A stretch of DNA of 64,000 nt from Schizochytrium sp. TIO01 (Eukaryota; Protista; Bigyra: Labyrinthulomycetes), in assembly GCA_004764695.1 (NCBI GenBank), contig SMSO01000031.1:6678761-6742760 (forward strand), written 5' to 3'. Below are positions 30,273 to 46,424 of this stretch, in pieces; position 1 is the first letter of the stretch, and each line of letters starts with the position of its first letter. A program made the position numbers and the translations under genes. Below the pieces are notes generated by a model that did no database searches, was not told the DNA's origin, and worked only from the letters and a program-made list of their open reading frames with translations.

Positions 30273-31556
30273 TTAGGCCTCAGCAGCGAGCTTAACGGCG
30301 GTCGCGGCAGCATCGTCGAGGTCATCAATAATGATGGCCTTCACATCAGATTTGTCGAGGATTTCGCGGGCCTTCTCCACGTTGGTGCCACGAAGACGGA
30401 CAACAAGCGGCTTGGCAAGGCCGATCTCCTTAGCGGCGGCAACCATACCCTCAGCAATGATGTCACAGCGCATGATTCCACCGAAGATGTTGACAAGGAT
30501 GGACTTGACCTTCTTGTCAGAGTCAAGAATCTCAAAAGCCTTGAGCACGGCATCCTTGGTGGCACCACCACCAAGATCGAGGAAGTTGCTGGCACTGCCG
30601 CCGTGGAGAGTGACGATGTCAAGAGTGCTCATGGCGAGACCAGCACCGTTGACCATGCATCCGACGGATCCGTCAAGACCAATGTAGTTGAGGCCGTACT
30701 TGGAGGCCTCAACCTCGCGGGGGTCCTCCTGGGTGCGGTCACGGAACTCAAAAATCTTTTTCTGGCGGAACTCTGCGTTGTCGTCGAAGTTGAGCTTGGC
30801 GTCAGAGCAGAAGACGTCACCGCTCTGGGTCTCAGCGAGCGGGTTGATCTCGACGAGGGTGCAGTCGCACTTAAGGAAGAGGTTGTAGAGGGAGCGAATG
30901 GTGTGAGCAGCCTTGGCGTGGGCCTTACCCTCAAAACCGAGGTTGCGGGCAAGACGCTCGACCTGCTCATCCTGAAGGCCGCTCATGATGTCAATCTTCT
31001 CAGTGAAGATCTTCTCCGGGGTCTCTTCGGCAACATCCTCAATGTTCATACCACCGGCGGGGGAGCCAACGAGGGTGACACCAACGTGGGAGCGGTCGAG
31101 GAGGATGCTGAAGTAAGTCTCGCGCTTGATGTTGAGGCGCTCCATGAGGAGAACACGGTTGCAGGGCTTGCCAGCCTCGCCGGTCTGCTTGGTGACAAGG
31201 AGCTGGCCGAGCATCTTGCTGGCAACCTCCTTGGCCTCCTCGCCCTTGGAGATCATCTGGACACCACCCTGGTATCCGTTCTTGAAGTGGCCACGGCCAC
31301 GGCCACCAGCGAGAACCTGGGCCTTAAGGACGGCATCCTTGCCGAGCTCACCACTCTCGAAAATCTTCTGAGCCTCCTCCGGGGTGTCGGCGTACTTGTT
31401 CTTGGGAACAGGCACGTCGAACTCGCTCATGACCTGCATACTAGCGTACTCATGGATGTTGAGGTTGCGCTTCTGGGTCTTGCGGAGAAGCTGTGCGCTG
31501 CGCGCGGGGCGGCCGGCCTTGGTGGCCATGCGCGAAAATCCCATGAGGCCAGACAT
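30273..31556 (-). CDS. SUCLA2: Mitochondrial succinyl-CoA ligase beta subunit (ADP/GDP specificity not determined)
   Basis: Transit peptide, then LNIHEY, KAQVLAGGRGRG, EINPL, DAKLNFDDNAEFRQ, GCMVNGAGLAM, NFLDLGGG, NIFGGIMRCD and RLRGTN. Confidence 0.96.
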   Translation of the reverse strand: MSGLMGFSRMATKAGRPARSAQLLRKTQKRNLNIHEYASMQVMSEFDVPVPKNKYADTPEEAQKIFESGELGKDAVLKAQVLAGGRGRGHFKNGYQGGVQMISKGEEAKEVASKMLGQLLVTKQTGEAGKPCNRVLLMERLNIKRETYFSILLDRSHVGVTLVGSPAGGMNIEDVAEETPEKIFTEKIDIMSGLQDEQVERLARNLGFEGKAHAKAAHTIRSLYNLFLKCDCTLVEINPLAETQSGDVFCSDAKLNFDDNAEFRQKKIFEFRDRTQEDPREVEASKYGLNYIGLDGSVGCMVNGAGLAMSTLDIVTLHGGSASNFLDLGGGATKDAVLKAFEILDSDKKVKSILVNIFGGIMRCDIIAEGMVAAAKEIGLAKPLVVRLRGTNVEKAREILDKSDVKAIIIDDLDDAAATAVKLAAEA

Positions 31557-31646
31557 TGTCTTTAATGTAATGAGAGTATGTGATAACAGTATAATTCACG
31601 TGTGTTGCTATTGACTTCCACTCGAATCTGTCCGCTTGATACAGTT

Positions 31647-32775
31647 CTGTTGATTGAATCCGTACGTGCAAAAGCAATTACAGTTTTGTTTGTTGTTCAA
31701 TTCACCCGACCAGAACCAGAGAACCCAATATGTGTAAAGAACGGAGATAGGAAGAACAGAATAAAACAAAAAGAAACCAGAGCCGAAATATGTGAGGAAA
31801 AGGACCAAAAATAAATAGGAAGCAAAATGAGGCCCAGTTGGTGCAGGTAGAGTGCAAGAGAGACGGGTGCGAGAGACAGCAGATACAATTTTTACATCAC
31901 ATCGTCCGTATCGAAAAGAAATGGTGGTCCATTTCCATCGCATCATCGTCGTTACGGAGAGAGCACGCGCGCGAAGGGAAAACAGACGTCCATTCATTCA
32001 TTGGCAGAAAGGTCAAACAAATTGCCCAGCATCAGAAAGCACGCGAGGGACGTTGGTTGCGGGGCCACAGCAGATGTGCAGTTGAGCATGCATAAGGAAC
32101 AAAACGAATAGATAATGCATTCATAGAGAACAGCAAACGAACAAGAGGAAAAAATGTCAATCGAATGCGACCAGCAACGCCAGCGCAGCATCCATTTCAC
32201 CGTGAGCACAGTACCGGCCAAGGCAGGCAGTCAAAGAAGCGAGGGGAATGGCGGCGAGGGGAATGTCAGAGGTTCAATCAAACAGATGGTTCATTGACAG
32301 CGGGTAGAGAGAGAGACATGTTGCGTCCAGAGCAGCGACAGGAGGTTTGCATCACATAAATCGGGAAACAAACAACAACAGCAGCAGCATAATCATACAG
32401 AAAATTTATCCGAGTCACAGGGGTAGCAAAGGCCGCAGGCAACACGAGTGAAGGTCAGCACGCAGAGCAACATATCAACAAAACAGAAAGAAATTACAGC
32501 AAAAATAGCACGAGTTCACGTCAGTCATCATTTTCATCAACATAATATTTTCCCCATTATATCTATCTTTCTCTATTTATATAAATATATAAATATAGAT
32601 ATAATCATCAGTCTACCCCAACATCGCGTCAGTCCGTCGCCCGTCTCTTTTCGGTTTCTTTCTTTCATGCCTTCTCTTTCGCTCTTTCCCTGTGTCTGTC
32701 ATGCCCCCCACCGACCCGCACCCAATGCCAGTCGGGGTTGAGGGAACAAAAACGGGGGTGTAGTATGCACCTTAC
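31647..32775 (-). other. Probable long 5'UTR intron of the succinyl-CoA ligase beta gene, with a 914-nt AG-free 3' region (donor position uncertain)
   Basis: Acceptor TCAACAG| at 31647, 90 nt upstream of the ATG. No CT on the + strand between 31649 and 32562. Branch-like GATGACTGACG at 32529-32519. Donor candidates are GTAAGG 32775, GAG|GTGAGA 33077 and GTAAGC 33351. Confidence 0.7.
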
Positions 32776-33419
32776 TGTGAGAAAGGCCTTTCGCATCTCA
32801 GCAAGCTCAGACCTACGATTCTTTTGCTCCTTCGACCTTTCCGAGCGAGAGAGACAAAGTCGGAGATCGAAGAGCAAAGGAACAGGAAGAACCGGGCACG
32901 CAAGAACTAAGGGGAGCAAGCTGAGCCTGCGACTGCACGCACGCACAACGATCACAAAAAGAGCGACATGTGGACCATCATTTCGGTAGGTGCAGCAGAG
33001 ACTTGAAGAACCGAGTCAAAAGAAAAGAACAGGCTTTTTCAAAAAACCCATCTATCTTTTTTCGGATCCTTTCTCACCTCCAGGCCGACGCGCCCGAACA
33101 AATGAAACAAAACCCCAGGAGGAGAACGGACATTGCGCCGGTGCCGAGCGGCAGCAGCGCAGATCGGAGAGGACCCGCGCTACTGCCTGGAGCCTCGGGC
33201 AAGACCGTGTCTCTCCTTGACGCATTCTCGAAGCGAGGTTGAGCATTGCTCTTGATTTGTTCTTCGCTCGCCGCCGTTGAAGCATGGCTGTATTGCAGTG
33301 CAGTGCAGTTTCTGTTCCTGTTCTTAGTGCATGTTAACTTCGCTCGCTTACTTCTGCTTATTCATTTGTTTGTCAACACGCTGCTGTTCCCAAATTTCCT
33401 TTCCGCTGGTTTATTCAAC

Positions 33420-36400
33420 AGTAATAATGAAGAATGGGTCAGAACAGAATTAACAAACAAGCAAAAGGAAGGAGGAAGAGAGAAAGAAAGAAAGAAAGAA
33501 AGAGAGAAAAGGGAAAAAAGCAGGAGGAAAGAAGGAAAGAAAGAAGGAAAGAACGAAGTTCAAAAAAGCGCGTCTTGTGCGCTTCTCCGCTTCGACCGTT
33601 CCTCGATCTCCGGACCTCGCCTGACGCGTACCGCGCGATCGAGCGAGGCCCGATGCTGCTCCCTGTCAATGGCCAGGCTTGCTTGCACCGGGCAATCCCA
33701 GGGATCAGTCTATCTTTCTCTCCGCTTGTGGTTTCCCTATATTTAAATATCCAAAAAGCGAGACGGGCGCGGAATGCGCAGCTGGGACCATCCGTGGCGC
33801 CTCGGCGGGCTTACGGAGCAGCTGACGCCTTCGCGTTGGAGCAGGACTCGAGGCGGGCGGGGCGGGCGAGCTCGCGGCTTGCATGCGAGCGTGAGGTCAC
33901 GCCGCCATGCCGCCGCCCTTGTTGCGCCTCCTGTCTGTCGCCTAGTGTTGCATAGTTCACGCACGAGTGTAGTGAGTTGAAGATTTGAATTCAAATTTGT
34001 AGCTCCCTCGCCGCTTTTGCGCCTTTGTATCTCCGCCCTCTGGGCCTCCTCACAAAGCGGCCAGTGTGCATTCCTCCTGACACCACTGCGAAAACGTCCC
34101 TCTCGAGACGCCCCTCAGATCCCTCACGCCTGGTCGCGGCGACCTTTGAAGGGCTCCTCTGCGCCGTTCCGCGTTTTCCCGCCGTTCTGCGCATTCATGC
34201 AGTTTCTCCTCTCCCACACTGGCCAGAGCGCCGCCCTGTGAGATCTCAGTCCGTCAAAGCGCCAGCCTTGGCCTTCAACCCGCCCGCGCCTGCGGAAAAC
34301 CTGGCCGAGCCGCTGGGAAACCCGATAGACTTACAGAAGCTGCCCTGGGCCGCCCTTCCCCCGAGTCTTTATGCCCCAAGAGGTGGCGAGCGCAGCGCTT
34401 TCGGGCGCGCGAAGATGGTCTTGAGCCATTCTCGCCATCCAGATTATTATTTACCTATTTATCTTTTTTTTTTTTTTTTTTTTTTAATAAGTTAAGTAAA
34501 ATATAACATTTTATTGAAATTTAAAATTCAAATCATTGTTTTCAAGTGTTTCAAAAATAAAATAACAAAATAATAATCATTATAAAATAAAACACAGTAA
34601 AACATTGTTTTTAAACTCGTTCCAATTATTTACTACCTCATATATGGTGCTTTCTTTCCGCAGCGGGTTTCTTCGTCAGATTTTCATGCCACCGACTCCT
34701 ATGTATTTAGGTATCTGGCCACCTAGGCAGCTGTCCAAAAAGAAAGAACTTGAACACCTTCAGAATTTGTTCTTTGCAAGCAGAATGAGTGAATTTGCGC
34801 CTTGAAATCCAAACCCGGTCGGATGAAAATGCCCATTTCTTCCCTCTAAGCCCTTGAATGGGAGTGGGCCTTGAAACCCCGCCTTCGGGCCTTCGCTCCC
34901 CCTGATCTGAGCGCCCATCTTTCGCTCTCTCGATCAGCTTCTCTTCAACTTTGCGGCGCATCGCCATTCAATCAATCCTTTCATCGATCGATTCCGCGTG
35001 AGCAGCGCCGATTTCAACTTTCCGACTGTTAGTTGGATTCTTACAGAGCGGATTTTTAGTTACCTCCTTGGCCCATCTATCTACCCTTTTGCTTAGCAGT
35101 CCCGAACATCTTTCGGAAGCATGAGTAATCGCTTTCATGAATACCAACTAGTCCGTGCCTCCCTAGTAACTACTACCCGGGGGATAGGTACCTCTACCGC
35201 TTGTTGAAGACTTTCACAGTTTGTAGTTTTAAATAATAGAAATAACTAAAATGGTTTGTAAGCGAGTTAATGAATTTGTGAATACAAATGAAAAAGAATA
35301 CTGGTAGGAAAGTAAGTACCTAGAACCTAGCAACAGGTAGGTAGGTAGGTATACCAAAGTATCCTTCGAAGAGATTTGTAACTGAGTGAATTGTTCATTA
35401 GAGTGAGAGAGAACAAAGAGAGAGTGGAGAACTTGAGAAAAGAGGCGTCAGAAGAATGAATGAACGAATGAATGAATGAATGAATGAATGAATGAATGAA
35501 TGAATGACATCATAGTCTGCTTTGAATTAGTTTCGCTCTGAGTTCGGAGAAACGACTTCTGCTTTAGAGGATACATTTCACTCACCGTAGAGACGAGAGA
35601 GCGCGAACGATCGGAGGGACTCACTCAGTTTCTGGGAAAAGCTGCCTCTCATTATTACAAAATTAAAACTCTTCATTCTAAAACAACTTTGATTTAGTGT
35701 AAAAGAAAAGAAAGAAGGATGGGAACACCTCCAGAATAGAACGAAGGAACGGGCGAAGATTTGGGCCACGCGAAACGGAATGAACTTGAACTGACTAAGC
35801 GCAGGTCAGCTCAGAACCAGCGGGCGATCGATCGAGATAGGGCTGAGGCCGGCAGACCCGGCTTTAGAGGGGTCCCGCTGAGACTTTCTGAGGCCGCCGC
35901 GCCGACAGAAAGGTATTCGCCAGGCTTCGAGGAGGAACAGAGGCGCAGAGAAAGAACTCGACGAATTTGCAAATTCGGGCATTCGATCGATCGACCAAAT
36001 ATATTTTAAATAAATTAAAAATTAAAAAAGTAAAATTAAAACAAATAAACGTTTTTTTGTTTTAAATTTATTTTTTAAAGAATGAGTTGGCCTACTTCCA
36101 TTAAATGCATGTAACAGAAAAGTGTAAAGGAGTTAGATTCATTGTTTCTTCTTTTCAGTCTTCTAATTCACAGGCGGCAATGTATCTTTCTATCTATCAT
36201 TCGCTCCCTTTCAGAAGAATGCTGCCGATGATCTTTCGGGCGCTGCGATAAATCCCAACAAAAGCCGCGCAAGGACGAAGATAAGGGCGCTATCGGCCTG
36301 CCTTCCTCAGCCCTCCCTTCGCCTTCGCGAGGCTTAGCGGAGAGGAGGCGCGGAGCGGATGATGATGCTGAGGAGCACTTTCGTCGTCATCGCCGTCGTC

Positions 36401-37222
36401 GCCGTGTTATCCTCCAGGATATCCTCGAATCCGTGTGGAACAGAACACAACGGAACAGAACAGGGCTATCGCCATTCTTTCTATCTATTTCAAAATATTT
36501 TTATTTAGAAAAAGGAATGAAAGTACAAGTTCTAATTTGGTTGAGAGGAAATGACGCGCAGCGATTCATTTTCAGGCGTCATCCTCATCGTTGTGCAAAA
36601 ACGCCTCCTGAAAGCGGCTTCGAAGCGCTCGAGGAGAAGACGGGCAGAATAAGCCTTGGAGAGGTAGGCCCTCGCAGGAACTCAGGTCTTCCGCAGCTCT
36701 GCGCGGGGGAAGACGCGCGTAAGGGGGTTCGAGAATGGCGCTTACTTCTTGATTTCTGGTTTTCCGGAAAGAAACTTGAAGAGAGTCTGAAAACAGAAAA
36801 ATAATGAAACAGCGAAAATAACAATTGAATGTGAAACAATTTTGATTTATTTGAACATCTGCAGTTTAATTTTAGTTTTAATCAAAGAACGACGCCGTTC
36901 CTTTCTTTGCTTTTCGAATTGGGCAGAAGAAGGGAGGACTGGAAAGGCGAAAGGATAGATTTCAAGATGGCTCTCGGCTTTCGCGCTTGCTTGCTTACCT
37001 ACTTACTTACTTGGTTGCTTTCCTTCTTCACGATTGCATGCGCGACAGATCACGCGCTTTGGAGGCCGCCTTTGCTCTTAAGCTGTGCGGGTTTCGCTCA
37101 ATCGTCACTCAGACTGTGAGTCTTTCTGTCTGTCTGTTGGCCTCTTAGGCTCTTGGTCTGTCCTCCCTCCCTTCCGTTTCTTCTTCTCTTTTCTCTTTCT
37201 CTTTCTCTTTCTCTTTCTCTTT

Positions 37223-37265
<43 letters not shown>

Positions 37266-37988
37266 CTCTCTGCGTCTGCTTTTTCCACCCATATGTATAT
37301 GTGTACATATGTATGTATGTGCGTACGTGGCGAAAGCAGTCGATGGATTGATCGATGATCGCCGCAATGGACGACGTCTGCGCGAACGAACGAAAGCGCA
37401 GGCCTGAATGCGTCTTTCAGGAGCGACTGAGGCAGTGTTTATTCATTCATTTGTATATTTATTTGTTTATTGATTTGTATATTTGTATATTTGTATATTT
37501 CTTCATTTGTTTGTTTGTTTGTTTATTGATTTGCAGCGCAGGCGACAGGAGACAGTAGTGTTTTTGATAGCCCACGTATCGACGGAGCTTTCTGCAGACA
37601 GCAGCGCAATTCAATCTTCATCGATAGGGGAGCACAGCGCAGAAGAAGGAAGGATCGATCAGTGGAGAGGCCGAAGCGTGTGCATTTTCATAAGAAGTTA
37701 ATGAAGAATCCAATGATTACAATTGCAAAACAAACGATCAAACAAAAGGAGGAAAGGAAGTCGCTGCGCTGGCTAGCTAGAAGTTGGCTAGTGGAATCAG
37801 TAGTAGCAGCTAGCTAGCAGTCGGCGTCGTTCAAAAGAACGCCTGCAATGAACGAATGCTTCAAGAACATTAGAGACGCACTTTCATTACGAGAAGGACA
37901 CAAAGACTTCAAGAGAGAGAGAGACCAATCAACGAAAATAAACAAAGGCTTTGTGGCATGATCGGTCGATGGCGCTTGAACATCATCA

Positions 37989-38019
<31 letters not shown>

Positions 38020-38060
38020 CTTCTTCTTCTGCTTCTGCTTCTGCTTCTGCTTCTTCTTCG
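33420..38060. repeat. Microsatellite-rich intergenic region ((GAAA)n, (GAAT)n, (CTTT)n, (CTT)n, (GTAG)n)
   Basis: Direct inspection, e.g. (GAAT)n 35455-35505, (TTTC)n 37190-37265, (CTT)n 37990-38030. Confidence 0.85.
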
Positions 38061-41000
38061 CCTAGTTTTCATCTGCTTCTGCTCCGATCAGATAGACCAG
38101 CGCCGGCAGCTCTGCGAGGAGGTCGGGTGAATGGGCGAAGAAAGCGCCGCCGCCGCCCTAAATTCGATCGATTATTCCGCAGGTTTTCAAGTCAGAGAAT
38201 TGGATGAGCTCAGGTTTTGGAAATCTCTGCTCTTATTTCTCATATTGAGAGGAGGAGGATACGGTCGTGCCAAAACTCAACATGTTCAAACAAGGATCAT
38301 AGTGACAAACAAACCAACCAAGAAACAAACCAACCAAGAAATGAACCAACCAAGAAATGAACCAACCAGGAATGCGGTGCGGATGGCCTTCTTGAGCTGC
38401 TTGTATGGATTGGCCATTCAAGTGAGCGATCGATCACCTTTGAGTATACTTTGGAATGATATTTGACGAAATGATATATTCTATTTTTTATTTTTTATTT
38501 TAAAACTGAGGCTTCTTTTTATTTTTATTTTTATTTTTTATTTTAATATTCAACTACTTCTTACAAATAAATGGTGAAAGCAGTTCACATTTGGAGCGCA
38601 GTCGTGAACGAAATCAAAGACAGTCGCAGAAATTAGACAGCCAGACGATGAGAAGCGCCTTGGGGATGGGTTATATTTGAAGATCGTACATGTGTACATG
38701 GTGGCGAAGGAACTATTTTCAATGAGATACGAGGTTGGCTTCATGGTTTGCTTGGAAAAATTAGCCTGAAGAAGCAGGGAATGTGAAATGTGGAATGGCC
38801 TGAGTCCTAACCTTTGTCGGAAAATCTAACTGGCACACCCATAGAGGACACTATTTATGCGTCAGAGCGACGTCATGATGGCGTCAGCACTGCTATCTTC
38901 TCATTTTCTTTTTTTAATGTTAAAAGCGCCTTCGCGCCTATTCCGCTCCTCTGTAACGATCGTGTTATACAACACCGATGGCTTATAGAGCTCAAGGCGA
39001 AATTCGAATTTGCGGCACGCTGGATCAAAGCCAAGACCGTTATTTTGCGTTTTGGTTTCTGAATATGCGACCCCATCGACCAAACCAGGTTTCGTTCGTT
39101 CAAGTGCAAATGCTGATTTCTTGACTCTTGACCTTCATCTTTTAGAATTACATTATACATTATAAACACGGACCGTGCTGGCAGTGTAAGATCTAATACA
39201 GCGAGGGGTGTCACCGCGATTGGGATGTATGACTAACTCATGAGGGAGGGCACCGAGTCCAACATGATCGGTGCCGACATAGCAAAATGTCCAACCTGTT
39301 CTACGATAAGCGAGCAATCTTGACTGGCAGCAATCAACTAAGCGCTATCATCTTGAAAAGAGGCGCACACTGCCACGCACGACATGTTCGTGACTATAAA
39401 CGAATAACCTCGCATTCGGGAGCCCAGAATCCAGCGACGCTCAGGGAGGGTTTCACTTTCATGGCATCTGCGTTAAAAAGAAACGCTCTGGGTTCGGGCG
39501 TCATCCAACACAAAAACCGCCATGAACATCCTACGACGCGGCTGGGCCCTGATAGTGTCATATGCTGGCATCTATCTGCGAGCTTGGAGCGTAGCTGTGC
39601 CTGTTTGCTGCGAGCTTCAGAGCATCTTCTTCAACTATCCCATTCGCATTGTTTTGCTGTTGGTTTTCATTAAATTCCGTTTATTTATAATATTTTATTT
39701 TTATTTTTAAGTGTTAATTAAAACTCATTTAAATTAAAAAAATAATCAAAAAATAAAAGAGAAGAAAGCATTTCCCTGTACATATATATATTTTTCCTAT
39801 TCGTACACACTCATATGGGTGCTCCTCGCTCTTGAACGCGACGACTTGCTCCATTCTTTCCAAAGTCTGCTTCTCACATCGACCTCTCTCCTTCTTTCGG
39901 GAGGTCTCTGCTCAGGCTCCTCATGAAACCCTTTCGATGATCCTTTCTTTTCTCACTTAATAACTTTAAAAAGAAAAGTAAAAGTAAAAGTAAAAGTAAA
40001 ACAATTAATCTTCAAATTCAAAAGCCATCTTATTACTCCTCTCAACAGCACCAACCAGCAGTAGGACCCCCCTAACGCCCCCTACCACCCGATATGTGGT
40101 TGTGGGGATGGCGCAACCACTGGCGAAACTTGCATCCGACGCTTGTACGGACTGACTCATCAATGATTGACTGCCGACACCATCGTGCTCAAAGTCCTCG
40201 GCACCTCGAGAGCCCTCGGCCCAAGGCCCGTAACCCCCGCCGCCGCTACGCCCTGCGCTCGCATGCAGCCAGCCTGCCTGCCTGCCTGATTATGCGGCTA
40301 GCTGCAGGCAGACCTGCCTGCTCGCGCCTTGCGGCAGCCGCCTCGAACTTGGGACTGAGCGCACAGTGCAATTCTCGCGGCGCAGCTGGTGCGGGTCTAA
40401 AAGGCTTGCGAGGTCTTGGAAATGGGCATATCCTTCCTTCTCGGTCCCGGTTTCCGGTGGACGGGCGCCCTGGGCGAAGGGGCTTAGCCCGTCGTAGCAG
40501 GGGCCTAGGGGGCGCTATAATATGAGGGGGGCGCACTGCATCGATGCCGGTGCAAACTACTGCAGAAAAGGCGCATCCTGCCATATCTTGGAGCTATTTG
40601 AGCCTGCCTGAAGATCCGGTACCCTTTGGCTACCTGTTTATCCTTGGAGTGTTGCGAACTTTGCGAAGAGCACACCGCTTCGTCACGAGTAGGAAGTTCT
40701 CAGGCACGCGGGAAATCCGCCAAACGTAAAAAATGCGTTAGTGGTACCGACACGGCGCACGGAGAAATAGGTACTGTAAAACAGTACCATTTGTCCGTTC
40801 GCCGCTTCTGGAGGAGGGTGGATTGTTGTAGAGGAAATGCTGCAGCTGCGTGAGGACAGGCCTTGGTTCTAGTTGCATTTGTACCTCATGAACTGACACA
40901 TAAGGCTGAATTAGAAAAGAGGGGGAGAATTGAGTGCAGAGACTTACAAGAACCACAAAAGCAACAGCAAGAACCTTCTACTGCCATTTTATCAGGTAGA

Positions 41001-41302
41001 TGTGCACTTACGTGCTGGCTATAGCCGCCGTAGAACGCACATCCTGAGGTTGCGGAGTGTGTACTTACTTGTGGGAGAGCAGCTAAGGTAGCCAAGTAGA
41101 AAAGGCCAGCAAGACTTTCGCGTTCTCATTTTAGGTCTGTCAAGTTCTGACTGCTAAACCAAGCGGTCGAATTGCAATCATCAGCAACAAACAGCAACAT
41201 AGGTTGCACGCAAGTCTTCCTTGTTGTGCTGATTTCTTTTGTTTGTTGCAGGCAATCGCGAACGGACACGCGCCGAGGTCGTGTGGCCTGCGAAGAACAA
41301 CA

Positions 41303-41338
41303 CGACGCGACGCGACGCGACGCGACGCGACGCGACGC
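41303..41338 (+). repeat. (CGACG)7 CpG-dense pentanucleotide repeat upstream of the putative TF gene
   Basis: cgacgcgacgcgacg... seen directly. Confidence 0.9.
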
Positions 41339-41701
41339 AAGTGATCCTCTACGAGCTAGCTCTGTAAGACAGAGCGATAGCTAAGGATCGGATTCGACAA
41401 ATCTCGTTAAAGTTCGACAGGCAAATCATACCATATCTTCATCGAGGTGAACGCTTACACGTGCAAGACGATTTGAGATTTCTTCAAAGCATCGTCGCCG
41501 AGCATTCCGTAGTTCTCTGGCGCATCAAGCGGCGTCACTTTCCTCAAGGTCTTTCGTCAATCAAAACGCACGAATCTCAACTTGGCGCATTTATTTAGGT
41601 AATCAGGGTTCGTGTTTTCTGTTTTTCACACGAAAACGCACTCGATCGATACACGCACGCAGTATAGCAGGTCGGTAGGATTTGGAAAAGTAACAATCAC
41701 A

Positions 41702-42747
41702 ATGGCGTGCGATCAAGGTGACACATGGCTCTTTGAGCCCCTCAGTCCGGATACGTTGACGCTTGGCGAAGGCGATCAAGTTAGCATGGGTGATAGTGCC
41801 CTCGATACTCTATTGGGAGATGACCTGCTTAACGAGGCCGTGCAGCTCCTTGGGGCGGAAGATTCTCAGACCAATATCATGCTTCAGAGCAGCGCACCAG
41901 GCGCAAACACTTCTGCGAGCAACAACAGCAATAACAACAACAACAACAAACAACAACAGCTATCAAGACGACAACTTCCCAAATCATTTGTCAAGAAGCA
42001 GTAGTTCTAGTAGTAACATCCGCGGCAGTATGGTGATGACCAGCAATCACAGCTCTCGTTTAAGCAACCACAAGGAGCGTATGATGGCCACTATGAACTT
42101 CCGGCAGCAAGAACCAGATTTCTTCTGTGGGAAGTAACAACAACGAAGATGCTGCTGCCTTCGACTTTGTGAGGCAGCAAGACATGCGTCTTGGCACGAT
42201 GGGTCAGAGCAGCGATGAAGGTGAATTAGAGCGGGAAATCCTTGAGTCTCTTGCAAGTGGAGATCCGGGTAAGCCCGAGGTAGATGAAGATCAGACCTTC
42301 AATTTTGTTGGTGACATCAAGCGTGCCTTTTCCCCCATCAAGCAGATTGTATACAACGGCCCGCGCTCCTCGTCTTTCACTGAGAGAGTCGATGATGACT
42401 GCGTAAGCCCGGAACCCTCGGACTTTTTAATGCCGCCACCTATGCATCAGCCTCACGCTTACAAATCTGCTGATGTTATCAGTGGAATGCAAGCCAGCAG
42501 CGTCAACAATGTCATTAACAGAAATAACAACAGCGTAAATAGCCAGAATAATAAAACCTCTGCGCCGCATCCGTACATTGGCAATAGTAGTAATAGCAGC
42601 AGTAGCAGCAGCCTCATGAGCCGCAAGGCTTCAGTGACAATGCCTAAGGACGACCTCGCTTCAGATCACGAGCCTCTCCTGAACTCGAACCCGAATCCGA
42701 ACCCGTGGCCTTCGGCAGCAGATTATAGGCGCATCTTCCTCGACTTC
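41702..42747 (+). CDS. Exon 1 of a putative transcription factor (N/S-rich), broken by two apparent +1 frameshifts
   Basis: ATG at 41702. Three overlapping ORFs (41612.., 41763.., 42127..) of similar composition step +1 each time. Ends at a phase-0 donor TTC|GTAAGT at 42748. Confidence 0.65.
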
Positions 42748-43477
42748 GTAAGTTTATTCTTGTTTCACTCAATGTGAGGGTGCTTGGGCGTGAGGAAAAT
42801 ACGATGATGAAGGATGGTATTGTGTTGGGATTGAATGAGTTGTTGCGCAAGACAATTGCTTGTGTTACTTCTAATTAGAGGAGAATCGGCGGGGGGCAGG
42901 CTTTTATTTGTGATGGATGAGAGAGAAAAATAACTGCACCGGCGGCGCTCTCAGATTTATACCTCTTTTTTAAAGTTCCCCGCACTGAGAGGAGCTATAG
43001 GTGTAAAGATAAAGAGAGACACCACCACATGTACTAAAAGAAAAGGCTTTTTAAGGACAACTTGACGAGCGAGCCATAAAAAATACTGGTGCCTAATCTT
43101 TTCTGAAGGGCGTGTGGTGTTGCATATTGAAATCGATGCATGCATGGCCTTGAAAGGGCGCGTGGATGTTCAACGCAGTTTCTTAGTGCATGTGTTCCAG
43201 AGATATCGGAGCGAGAGAGAAAGAGAGAGAGGGGGAGGGTTGGTGTAAGGGATTAAGAGATCATTTTGTTAAACGAGGAGTGTGTCTGAGGAAGAAAAAG
43301 AGAACACAAAGCAGCACCGCACCGAAAAGCAAAAAATCATTCAACGCGGAAATCAGAAACCATAAGGAAAGAAAAGAACGCAGATTGAAAACAACAACCA
43401 AAAGCAAACAAAACAAAAAAGAGAATGCGAAACAGAAACAAAAGAGGCAAAGGAAACATGCACGAAAGAACAAGAAG

Positions 43478-43508
<31 letters not shown>

Positions 43509-45266
43509 AATGCAATGACGAAGAAAGAAATCAGAAAGAAGAAAGAAGAAGAAAGAAGAAGAAGAAAGAAAAGAAAAAGAAAAAACTAGCGCTGCAAACT
43601 GAAGAAAAGGAACGGAAAGGATCTTTTAAAACGCTGCTGCAAAGCAAGAGAACAAACAGATACAGATAAGAGAGACCGACCACAGAGACGAAGACAGTCA
43701 CATCTACCGAGTTCACGACAGGGAGATCCAAACTCCGCCTGCGTTCTCTTCCTTCTTCTCTCACCCCGCGAATCGCAGCCTTCGTGCGTGCGCTTTTGCA
43801 GAGGCGGAAGAAGGAAACATTAAAATTTAGAGAGATCCTCCTCTTTTTCTTCAAGTTCCTCTTCTTCTTCTTCTTCTTCTTCTTCTTCTTGAAGTTCTTC
43901 TTCTTCATTCCTCGCATACGTTGCGTGCGGGAGCGAACTAAGTCGTTCACTCTCCCTCCTCTCTCGCGCCTCTTCTTCGCTTGCTTGCGTTCTTTTCTTG
44001 GCTTCTGTTCTTTTCTGTCGTGGCGGTTGTTCCACTCAATCACTCACTCACTCATTCATTCTAAGTGGTCCAAGATCGCGAGCACGCGATCGAGGGAGAT
44101 CCAGATTTCACCGGCTGCGAGCCAGGCAGGAGGGAGATCCAAGAACTAACTGAGAGGCGATCTCGCATGAGAGAAATGGAGGGAGAGAAAGATAGGATAG
44201 CGGAGCAGAGCGAATGGGAATGGGAATGGGTTCGAGAGCGAATGCAGAGAGGACGAAAGGGCTTTCACTCGGGGAGAGATGAGGGAGGGCCGGGGCGGGC
44301 GAACTGAGGTGGTGCGTGTGCAGACAGAGACAGAGAAGAACTCGGATGACTGACGGAAATGCTGTTGACGTTTTTATTTTTGCTGGTTTCCTTCCTTCCT
44401 TCCTCCTTCCTTCCTTCCTTCCTTCCTTCATTCATTCATTCATTCCCTCCTTCCTTCCTTCGTTTGCTCGCTTGGTTGCTTGCTTGTTTGTCGATTGCGC
44501 ATTGTTTGCATATTCAATGTGTTCTTGGGTACGCATTCCATTTCATTCCACCTCATTTCATTTCATTCCATCTCATTCCATTTCATTCCATCTCATTTCA
44601 CTCGGCGACGACTGCCTTTACTTTACCTTTGGGGCCATTTGCGATACCATACTTCCATGGCGGCTCTCTCCCTCCCCGCACTCGCGCACGCGGGCTCTCG
44701 AAATCGAAATTGAAATCGATTCGAAACGATGGACTCCGTCTGCCACGCGATACGATACGCACTGCCTGCCTCTGGGCTGACGTGCGGTCGACGTAATGCC
44801 GCCTGCGAAACGACGCAACTCGCCACCGCGACCATGGCCGCCTTCACTTACTTCCTTACTTCTCGCGCACTGCCTCCTTCATTCCTGCATGCCTTCACGC
44901 CTTCATTCCCTCACTTCTTCCTTCCTCGCCCACCTGCAACTGCTCTCTCTCTCTCTCTCTCTCGTGCCTCCTGCGTCGGCTGTTCATTCGCGCATGGTCC
45001 GCGGCTGCGCGGTTTGGTGATGTCTTGTCTTGCGCGATCTCCGCTTCCCGTGCGGCTGGCCTGGCCTGCCTCGACATCTCTGCGGTCTTCGATTTGCCTC
45101 TCGCGGCGTTGACTCTGACTAACTTAACTTTGTGTGCGCACACGCCGGAACGAACTTGGACATGGATCGCGTGTGCAACGCAAAATAACAATATCCTGCG
45201 ACGAATCTCTGCGCCGAATAAAATACCAACAAACGAACGAACGAACAAACAAATAAACAAACACAG
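42748..45266 (+). other. 2519-nt phase-0 spliceosomal intron with a 926-nt AG-free 3' region
   Basis: GTAAGT donor and ...AAACAAACACAG acceptor. Splicing joins RRIFLDF|LADETKYPLYTVEQL in frame. No AG from 44339 to 45264. Branch-like GATGACTGACG at 44345-44355. Confidence 0.85.
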
Positions 45267-46424
45267 CTCGCCGATGAGACCAAGTACCCGCTGTACACGG
45301 TGGAGCAGCTCGGCGTCTGCAAGCTGACGGGAACGCCGAAGCAGCCGAGCTGGCTGTACTGTGAGCCACGCGTCGGTATCTTCTTCTTCGAATGCGAGCA
45401 CCTGCGCGGCAAGGCCGGATATGGCTTTCCCAAGGCTGAGGGCACGAAAAAGCTCTTCGAGTGGAAGAAGACCTCGTACATCAACGAGGTGCCCCGCGCG
45501 AAACCGCTGGTGTCTTACATCACTGCCAATGGCAAGCCGCGCAAGGTTGAAGGCAACCCGTACACCACGGGCTTTCGCATGCGCATCGTTAAGATTGCCA
45601 ACCCTGATCAGACACAGTATGGAAAACGTGCCAAGCAATTAGTCCTGTGCGACATTCGCGAAGCCCACGAGCTTGCGAAGCGCCAAGGCCCGCGGCCACC
45701 GAAGCGTGTTTCGAAATTCGATTCTTCTTCCACCGATGGCTACTCCATGCATGGATCTTCGCTTCACGGATCGCTTCAGGGCAGTCCACTCAGCACGCCC
45801 AGAAACAGTGGTTCTACAGCAGCAGCAGCAGCGGCTCGGTTACAGCAACAACAGCAGCAACAGCAGCAACAGCAGCAGCAGCAGCAGCATTACCTTCGGG
45901 CACAGCTTCTTCAGCATCAGCAGCAACAACAGCTGCAATCTCGCCAGCACCTCCACCAACATCAACACCAGCTTCAGCAACAACAGCACCACCACCACCA
46001 CCCGCATCAGCTTCAGCATCAGATGACGCAAGATGAGCGCCACGAGTGTGGAAATGGCCACCAAGACCATCTTCCGCAGCGACGCACCATGCCTGTGCAT
46101 TCTGTGCAGACGCCTCGGGACATGCCAGCTCCAAACTCTCGCAAGACTCCACCTTCGATCGACACAAGCCCGAAAGAAGTCGAGTCTCCCGTTTTTATTA
46201 CGGCCTCCACCCATCGGCCGTACCACCCGACGCCCGTTCAGCGTACCCAGCTCGTGCATCCTCACCCCACTCCGGCTTGGGCAGCTCGCGCAACGAGCGA
46301 CATGAACGCAATGCCCTTGTCTCCCCTGAAACGTCTTTCCATTCAGTCCCAAGAGGACGGCGCCAGTTTCGTCAATGGGTCCCCCAAGGGCTCCAAGATG
46401 CAGCGGCGCAGTGTTTGCCCATAG
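45267..46424 (+). CDS. Exon 2 of the putative transcription factor: basic CG-1-like domain, then poly-A/poly-Q/His tracts
   Basis: In frame with ORF 45300..46424. GC3-rich codons in the ordered domain; CAG/CAA poly-Q at 45843-46020. Confidence 0.8.
   Translation, partial: LADETKYPLYTVEQLGVCKLTGTPKQPSWLYCEPRVGIFFFECEHLRGKAGYGFPKAEGTKKLFEWKKTSYINEVPRAKPLVSYITANGKPRKVEGNPYTTGFRMRIVKIANPDQTQYGKRAKQLVLCDIREAHELAKRQGPRPPKRVSKFDSSSTDGYSMHGSSLHGSLQGSPLSTPRNSGSTAAAAAARLQQQQQQQQQQQQQQQHYLRAQLLQHQQQQQLQSRQHLHQHQHQLQQQQHHHHHPHQLQHQMTQDERHECGNGHQDHLPQRRTMPVHSVQTPRDMPAPNSRKTPPSIDTSPKEVESPVFITASTHRPYHPTPVQRTQLVHPHPTPAWAARATSDMNAMPLSPLKRLSIQSQEDGASFVNGSPKGSKMQRRSVCP

Follow-up and report, generated by a model that had tools for sequence, protein, structure and literature searches.

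Within a 64,000-nucleotide (nt) stretch of the Schizochytrium sp. TIO01 genome (hereafter the window; G000:C30:6678761-6742760 in the 64-Mb genome G000), two regions of more than 900 nt lack the dinucleotide AG altogether, and each is headed by the same two words of 11 nt, box 1 (GATGACTGACG) followed by box 2 (TATTTTTGCTG). This locus raises the question of what the shared words do and how they relate to the loss of AG downstream. A preliminary description of the window had read the two boxes as one bipartite signal heading introns. Comparison across the genome indicates instead that box 1 (GAUGACUGACG in RNA) probably serves as branch-point sequence in a small set of ordinary U2-type (GT-AG) introns, and that box 2 is not a general head signal.

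On the + strand, box 1 occupies 44345-44355 and box 2 44375-44385, separated by 19 nt, at the head of an AG-free zone of 926 nt (44339-45264) in the 3' part of an intron. On the - strand, box 1 (32529-32519) and box 2 (32507-32497) are separated by 11 nt and head a zone of 914 nt (32562-31649) in a transcribed region upstream of succinyl-CoA ligase beta. All four copies are exact, and both boxes fall within the first 70 nt of the two zones. The last upstream AG lies 6 nt before box 1 on the + strand and 33 nt before it on the - strand, and the letters following box 2 are GTTTCCTTCC and TAATTTCTTTC, respectively, as quoted in the preliminary description, whose placement and spacing of the 11-mers at the heads of AG-free zones were exact. 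On the + strand, box 2 forms the first part of a U/C-rich tract beside the putative branch site, for which A 44353 is the predicted branch nucleotide. The predicted distance from branch A to AG is 913 nt (+) and 874 nt (-). The two heads lie 11.8 kb apart in inverted orientation.

The absence of AG is specific to that dinucleotide. The + and - zones contain no AG where 30.4 and 32.3, respectively, are expected from composition, while GA, CA, TG and other dinucleotides are present inside both. AG occurs in the window with a mean spacing of 15 nt, the third-longest AG gap there is 298 nt, and gaps longer than 432 nt were found for AG and for no other dinucleotide. Across the 264 kb sampled (the 64-kb window and 200 kb of C31, to which short loci were added), the only AG-free stretches longer than 300 nt were these two. 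The largest AG gap in the 200 kb of C31 was at most 145 nt, in a sample that is possibly atypical, having a G+C content of ~42%, lower than that of the window, and holding a (TTAGG)n run. An internal telomere-like (TTAGG)n run is located at G000:C31:3188000-3194500. Rfam covariance models gave no match at 32400-32700 or 44200-44500 and only three sub-threshold matches elsewhere in 31000-46000.

Box 1 recurs at the heads of other AG-free zones. The 64-Mb genome contains 85 exact copies, compared with 31 of the reversed control word, and approximately 40 of the 85 lie in two tandem arrays. Besides the two copies in the window, 44 dispersed copies and one tandem-array copy were examined. Four of the 44 dispersed copies head AG-free zones of 276-378 nt, with 255-365 nt between the box and the first AG, and these zones begin, at the last upstream AG, 2-10 nt upstream of box 1. 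Only 0.12 such sites would be expected among 44 (P about 7e-6), an expectation based on the 0.27% of sampled positions that are followed by at least 255 AG-free nt, the zones of the window being counted. With the window included, zones of 276-926 nt begin at six of the 46 exact copies that are not in tandem arrays, each with its last upstream AG 2-33 nt before box 1. This observed association upholds, genome-wide, the earlier view of box 1 as a branch-site-like word at the edge of AG-free zones. Each of the six zones contains no AG where 13-32 are expected, and since several of them are not pyrimidine-rich, it is AG itself that is avoided. The distances from the predicted branch A to the first AG are 913, 874, 369, 259, 338 and 331 nt. 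A length constraint had been suggested on the strength of the first two values alone, and the remaining four, at 259-369 nt, do not bear it out.

The core of box 1 is not sufficient to predict a zone. The 264 kb contain 109 other ACTGAC sites, and in every case an AG follows within 100 nt (Fisher P = 5e-4), which argues that the longer word, rather than the core alone, is informative. At shorter range, the first AG is at least 40 nt away in 14 of the 45 copies examined, many of which end in an acceptor-like ..ACAG, and many apparently ordinary introns with box 1 have branch-to-AG distances of ~40-85 nt. A search for enriched k-mers in the six zones returned microsatellites only, with GCTG mildly over-represented. 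Identical flanks surround box 1 at L062 (C14:81816-82286) and L073 (C31:36157-36627), which are on different contigs, and also at L067 and L068 (C30:5729920-5731521), which are 1.1 kb apart. These pairs are duplicated segments, so they are not independent occurrences of box 1.

The 3' ends of the zones can be placed where exon junctions are recognizable. For the + zone, comparison with the homologue P0002 was performed exon by exon. Exon 1 (..AADYRRIFLDF) stops at 42747, directly before GTAAGT, and its last 16 residues align to P0002 residues 89-104; exon 2 (LADETKYPLY..., open frame), which starts at 45267, aligns from P0002 residue 105 (E = 2e-49). As the flanking exons thus join without a gap between residues 104 and 105, the homology identifies 42748-45266 (+; GTAAGT...ACACAG) as an intron whose acceptor AG, 45265-45266, is the first AG after box 1. 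The model of a JGI protein of 326 amino acids, P0001, starts (MNSQLEDETRYPLY..) just before the position matching the start of exon 2 in the window. The gene predictor may have missed an upstream exon of P0001 across a long intron.

Junctions were also observed in three of the four genes with dispersed box 1 zones. In the ubiquitin-L40 gene (C24:3687300-3690400; zone of 276 nt), exon 1 ends ..gcacgATGCAG before GTAGGT, the acceptor CAG lies 6 nt after a GAG, and exon 2 (ATCTTTGTAAAG) matches the Pfam ubiquitin profile from its position 1 (2.4e-33; Ribosomal_L40e 3.7e-25). In RPS5 (C32:399200-402300; zone of 342 nt), exon 1 (MAATEIKLFNKW; ..FNKW) is followed by GTACGT and the acceptor ..AAAATATAG, which ends in ATATAG, precedes G TCC TTC..; exon 2 reads on as SFADIQIEDLGLQDY (Ribosomal_S7 6e-17), and the conserved KWS is restored at the junction. 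In the gene for queuine tRNA-ribosyltransferase (TGT; C31:2929300-2932400; zone of 350 nt), exon 1 ends in ..KHS(R) before GTAAGT, the acceptor is ..ATATACAG (ATACAG), and exon 2 (ARVGIIETPHG..) begins at position 3 of the TGT profile (9e-23). The fourth zone (C3:506300-509400; 378 nt) ends 33 nt before the ATG of its gene. Thus, in four genes (ubiquitin-L40, RPS5, TGT and that of the + intron), homology or Pfam boundaries show the first usable AG downstream of the zone to be the acceptor. The acceptors of this genome are rich in A and C (..CAACAG, ..ACACAG, ..ATATAG). The start-codon context gcacgATG is common to the unrelated genes for ubiquitin-L40, TGT and RPS5 (L099, L100 and L101; reverse-complement positions ~1270, 1290 and 1265), and in these three genes the first intron lies 2-17 codons from the ATG.

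Box 1 is also found at an ordinary branch-site distance in short introns. The two tandem arrays (C4:246443-265814 and C30:8206625-8214099; period ~480 bp) encode leucine-rich-repeat (LRR; RNI-like) proteins and consist of 84-nt exons (..NxIGxEGAKALAAAL..NQSLTSL), each followed by an intron of ~390 nt, as read at L038 (G000:C4:246300-247500). In each of these ~40 introns, box 1 is located ~60 nt before an acceptor ..ATTCAATCAAATCAACAG, a tail nearly the same as the one that ends the - zone (ATTCAATCAACAG).

These results are most simply accommodated if box 1 serves as a branch site. U2 small nuclear RNA (snRNA) would pair with ACUG(A)C and bulge the branch A. Once the first catalytic step is complete, the exons would be joined at the first usable AG downstream, whatever its distance, and selection would consequently clear every AG between branch and acceptor. 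The expected outcome would be zones without AG that extend from a few letters beside box 1 to the 3' splice site, and box 2 would be the mere start of a U-rich tract by the branch site at the two longest zones. A U2 snRNA with the canonical GUAGUAUCUGUUCU and its GUAGUA was read in the genome (L037:1501-1696 (-), G000:C36:2305511-2305706; 92.7 bits), the only match reported among the 47 of 1871 first-look candidates that were scored. A run of seven U lies directly 5' of GUAGUA, where the Rfam consensus is AUCAAGU. Box 1 ACUG(A)C forms five pairs with GUAGUA, one of them G-U, leaving the branch A bulged.

Several observations weigh against this interpretation. The branch position, and thus branching at box 1 itself, is something we infer. 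The predicted U2 duplex of box 1 (-3.7 kcal/mol) ranks only 390th of 1024 NNNNACUGACN contexts. One-mismatch neighbours of box 1 are not enriched genome-wide (942 vs 947 in the control), nor is the CTAAC variant GATGACTAACG (23 vs 22), and a branch-site role leaves the recurrence of this exact 11-mer without an explanation. Branch-like words also occur nearer to acceptors: the + zone contains a strong alternative candidate, CTGACTAAC, at 45115-45123 (+), 147-150 nt from the acceptor; CTGAC occurs at -53 in TGT, and TTAAC/TTGAT at -9/-14 in ubiquitin-L40. Furthermore, an AG is passed over in the GAG 6 nt before the used CAG of ubiquitin-L40 and in the LRR-array introns, where a GAG 30 nt after box 1 is skipped and CAG is used. 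The first-AG rule therefore needs the known weakness of GAG as an acceptor, for which scanning and competition work is cited in Gooding et al. 2006 (PMC1431707). Lastly, the intron status of the - zone is less secure than that of the + zone, and a spliced form of it was not seen.

By analogy with the other five loci, the - zone may be the 3' end region of an intron. The succinyl-CoA ligase beta coding sequence (30273-31556, -; Pfam ATP-grasp_2 1.9e-69, Ligase_CoA 1.6e-28) begins with the ATG at 31556, 90 nt downstream of the first AG after the zone (31648-31647). The acceptor-like tail ATTCAATCAACAG (31636-31648, -) resembles the LRR-array intron tail noted above, and the many ATGs in the zone mean that it cannot be a scanned leader. 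Transcript coverage was assessed from Logan contigs of four runs from four studies over 30300-35300. None of the 24 runs is recorded as RNA, and these four were taken as RNA-like on contig totals of 25-48 Mb for a 64-Mb genome; further RNA-like signs were the unequal depth of adjoining contigs in X1 and coverage ending at differing points (34154-34378) with nothing beyond. In all four RNA-like runs a single unbroken contig extends from the coding sequence through the zone to 34154-34378 with no joint, so that ~2.8 kb upstream of the ATG is covered (31557-34378, -). Since an abundant spliced form using AG 31648-31647 would be expected to break the contigs at 31647, such a form is unlikely in those runs, although assembled contigs cannot prove its absence. 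The preliminary description had treated both zones as introns; the + zone is verified as one by homology, and for the - zone the RNA-like contigs give no spliced form. Either the main mRNA of this gene begins a short distance downstream of the zone, or splicing of the zone seldom occurs in the conditions sampled. Immediately beyond the contig ends (34154-34378) comes an A/T-rich block with a poly(T) run (34450-34620), and no open reading frame in the leader had a Pfam match. Strain variants in the zone (three single-nucleotide polymorphisms and two indels) create no AG, a result that is uninformative given that only ~13% of substitutions would.

Two further explanations were each considered possible though unlikely. 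The first is a dedicated long-range search for the 3' splice site, in which the invariant branch word GAUGACUGACG would be recognized by a factor more specific than U2 pairing, for example SF1/BBP or a component of SF3, and would commit the spliceosome, which would then travel or wait over up to ~900 nt of unstructured RNA, with box 2 needed for the longest tracks. If true, no branch-to-acceptor distance so far proposed, in whatever organism, would reach half of this one, and the genes concerned would be housekeeping genes. The U2 comparison bears on the extended U2 pairing suggested previously. The GAU in box 1 adds three U2 pairs only across a bulged G, whereas a contiguous GAUACUGAC would pair far better. 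The average rank of the box 1 duplex thus indicates that extended pairing is not what sets this word apart, and the earlier suggestion is not supported by the usual five pairs. RNA structure bridging the head and tail of the zones was rejected, as the window zones fold no better than shuffled sequences (z = +1.0 and +2.5); the minimum free energy fold pairs (UUUG)n-like pieces of the head with (CAAA)n-like tails in a helix of the size expected by chance.

The second, held at about the same level of doubt and compatible with a branch-site role for box 1, is common descent of the two window heads, by an old local inverted duplication or by copying of an intron 3' part into the neighbouring gene, after which only the constrained pieces (box 1, the U tract with box 2, freedom from AG and perhaps length) would remain recognizable. 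The box pair occurs together only at these two sites in 64 Mb. In addition, two of the six known zones lie within 12 kb (P about 0.006), in inverted orientation, and their near-equal lengths of 926 and 914 nt stand apart from the 276-378 nt of the other four. A third shared word, AGAGAAAGATAG, is found upstream of box 1 in the same order at both loci, with three of its 44 genomic copies in this 12-kb locus, and gapped alignment of the heads scores above 296 of 300 shuffles and all 294 real-sequence controls.

Against common descent, the 850-nt zone bodies and the flanks retain no similarity. Local alignment and blastn of the bodies returned microsatellite-like matches only, and their global alignment score (31.5) is within that of block-permuted controls (29.9 +/- 6.3), in agreement with the preliminary description, which had called the two regions otherwise unrelated. 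The sequences separating box 1 from box 2 match neither in length nor in letters, and the genes that follow the two zones are unrelated. Were the zones diverged to saturation, each with its own microsatellites, their equal lengths would have to be coincidental as well. Composition may also account for the shared words. The sharing of AGAGAAAGATAG has, by our own estimate, a chance of ~0.26 given two GA-rich stretches before the heads, and for two T-rich tracts anchored on box 1, the sharing of one more 11-mer within 50 nt has a P of about 0.01. At both loci, box 1 is also preceded by a purine-rich word, AGAGAAAGATAGGATA, found at 44184-44199 (+), 32574-32560 (-) and 33721-33710 (-), which is probably a composition effect. 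The letter-identity of box 2 is thus either a ~1-in-100 coincidence of T-rich tracts or a trace of a common origin of the neighbouring heads. A related candidate, an introner-like repeat or mobile family, was rejected: both zones with their heads are single-copy, and only microsatellite pieces match elsewhere.

Rather doubtful is the full model of the preliminary description, in which boxes 1 and 2 act as one bipartite signal with extended U2 pairing and a pseudo-acceptor, needed for very long zones. It draws on the 11-19 nt that separate box 2 from box 1 at each of the two longest zones, on an abundance of box 2 about twice that of its reversed control (82 vs 37 exact copies in 64 Mb), and on the architecture of human PTB exon 11, which also has a branch site and an adjacent U-rich tract at the edge of the zone (PMC1431707). 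The very-long-zone class, however, consists of two cases only, and the half of the signal represented by box 2 did not recur with the half represented by box 1. The four further box 1 zones have no box 2; the zone on C3 is moderately T-rich, and no U tract follows the branch site in ubiquitin-L40, TGT or RPS5. A U/C-rich tract, starting with box 2, is present at the two window loci. Box 2 was sampled at 40 of its 80 further exact copies. AG-free stretches around these copies extend to 173 nt at most, none of the copies falling in a long one, and CTRAC was present in the 80 nt upstream of just six. The relaxed pattern GACTGAC..TTTTGCTG gave 16 matches, compared with two in the control and due in part to (GACT)n microsatellites, and at the ~12 places elsewhere none heads more than 96 nt without AG. 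The proposal that box 2 mimics an acceptor with CAG changed to CTG fares no better, the local acceptors being A/C-rich and not U-rich.

Somewhat less probable still is that branching takes place near the acceptors and box 1 is another intronic element, such as a transcription factor site with TGAC/TGACG or an intron-mediated enhancer, the avoidance of AG being otherwise caused. Such an element would be in keeping with the location of five of the six loci in first introns or 5' leaders, with the nearer branch-like words in the + zone, TGT and ubiquitin-L40, and with a - zone that is transcribed with no spliced form seen. The boundaries of the avoidance speak against it. At all six loci it spans from 2-33 nt upstream of box 1 to the acceptor, affecting no other dinucleotide, a pattern that only a branch-to-acceptor rule fits. 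Moreover, three zones lack YTRAY near the acceptor (none within 160 nt in the - and C3 zones, none within 107 nt in RPS5), and box 1 stands at branch-site distance in the ~40 short LRR-array introns.

That both 11-mers are chance matches of unrelated sequences is scarcely credible: the + intron and the - leader do have about a dozen exact words of 11-14 nt in common, mostly of low complexity, so that raw 11-mer odds overstate the pair, and a metagenome scan for the exact bipartite string gave 14 matches at about chance frequency in unrelated bacteria, yet the four further zones contradict chance for box 1 (box 2 alone stands at P of about 0.01), the pair is found nowhere else in 64 Mb, and the two zones that alone exceed 900 nt have both boxes within their first 70 nt. 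Twelve of the 14 matches come from one soil-bacterial gene and two are unrelated, with no relative among them; the twelve soil-metagenome contigs (L039-L051; 54-59% G+C), which are unrelated to the window, share a conserved stretch in which GATGACTGACG, 11 nt and TATTTTTGCTG follow one another by coincidence.

U12-type introns have a long, highly conserved branch-site word, as seen here, and their branch sites lie 10-26 nt from the acceptor. This class was rejected on the basis of 5' splice sites (GTAAGT/GTAGGT/GTACGT, not [AG]TATCCTT), a box 1 unlike TCCTTRAY and a distance of 259-913 nt. Our literature search returned no report of long AG-free zones in labyrinthulomycetes.

Most likely, the introns with box 1 at the head of a long AG-free zone are an extreme variant of the distant-branch-point introns already described. 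In mammals, exons with distant branch points and AG exclusion zones include alpha-tropomyosin exon 3, PTB exon 11 and nPTB (Gooding et al. 2006, PMC1431707), and the scanning model of Smith and colleagues is cited in that work. Human zones reach 381-438 nt with predicted branches at -351 to -389, and PTB exon 11 has UACUGAC and a U tract at -351 (PMC1431707). Features shared with mammals are a branch-site consensus that borders the AG-free stretch on its 5' side, a U-rich tract beside it at some loci, use of the first usable AG downstream as 3' splice site where the junction is recognizable, and, at several loci, the lack of a good branch site close to the acceptor. The human zones differ in reported lengths that reach 381-438 nt, where two here are 914-926 nt, in belonging mostly to regulated alternative exons, where ubiquitin-L40, RPS5 and TGT are included here, in having degenerate branch sites rather than one invariant 11-nt word, and in the U tract that follows the branch site, which is not general here. 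In budding yeast, long distances between branch and 3' splice site are bridged by RNA structure in some introns, e.g. that of COF1 (Gahura et al. 2011, PMC3239191). This genome resembles yeast in its strong, invariant branch word and in a choice of 3' splice site that depends on the branch-AG interval. In yeast, however, a stable hairpin shortens the effective distance, whereas the folding of the window zones gives no indication of bridging, and the distances here are several-fold longer.

These introns bear on how a 3' splice site is found after branching, for which linear scanning, diffusion and structure are debated. The mammalian study material consists of a few weak, regulated exons with distances up to ~400 nt. 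An organism with one exact branch word and AG-free tracks of 260-910 nt without excess structure would offer a natural test bed. Any AG-creating mutation within these zones should be deleterious, and gene prediction in thraustochytrids, which are industrial producers of docosahexaenoic acid (DHA), will miss first exons across such introns.

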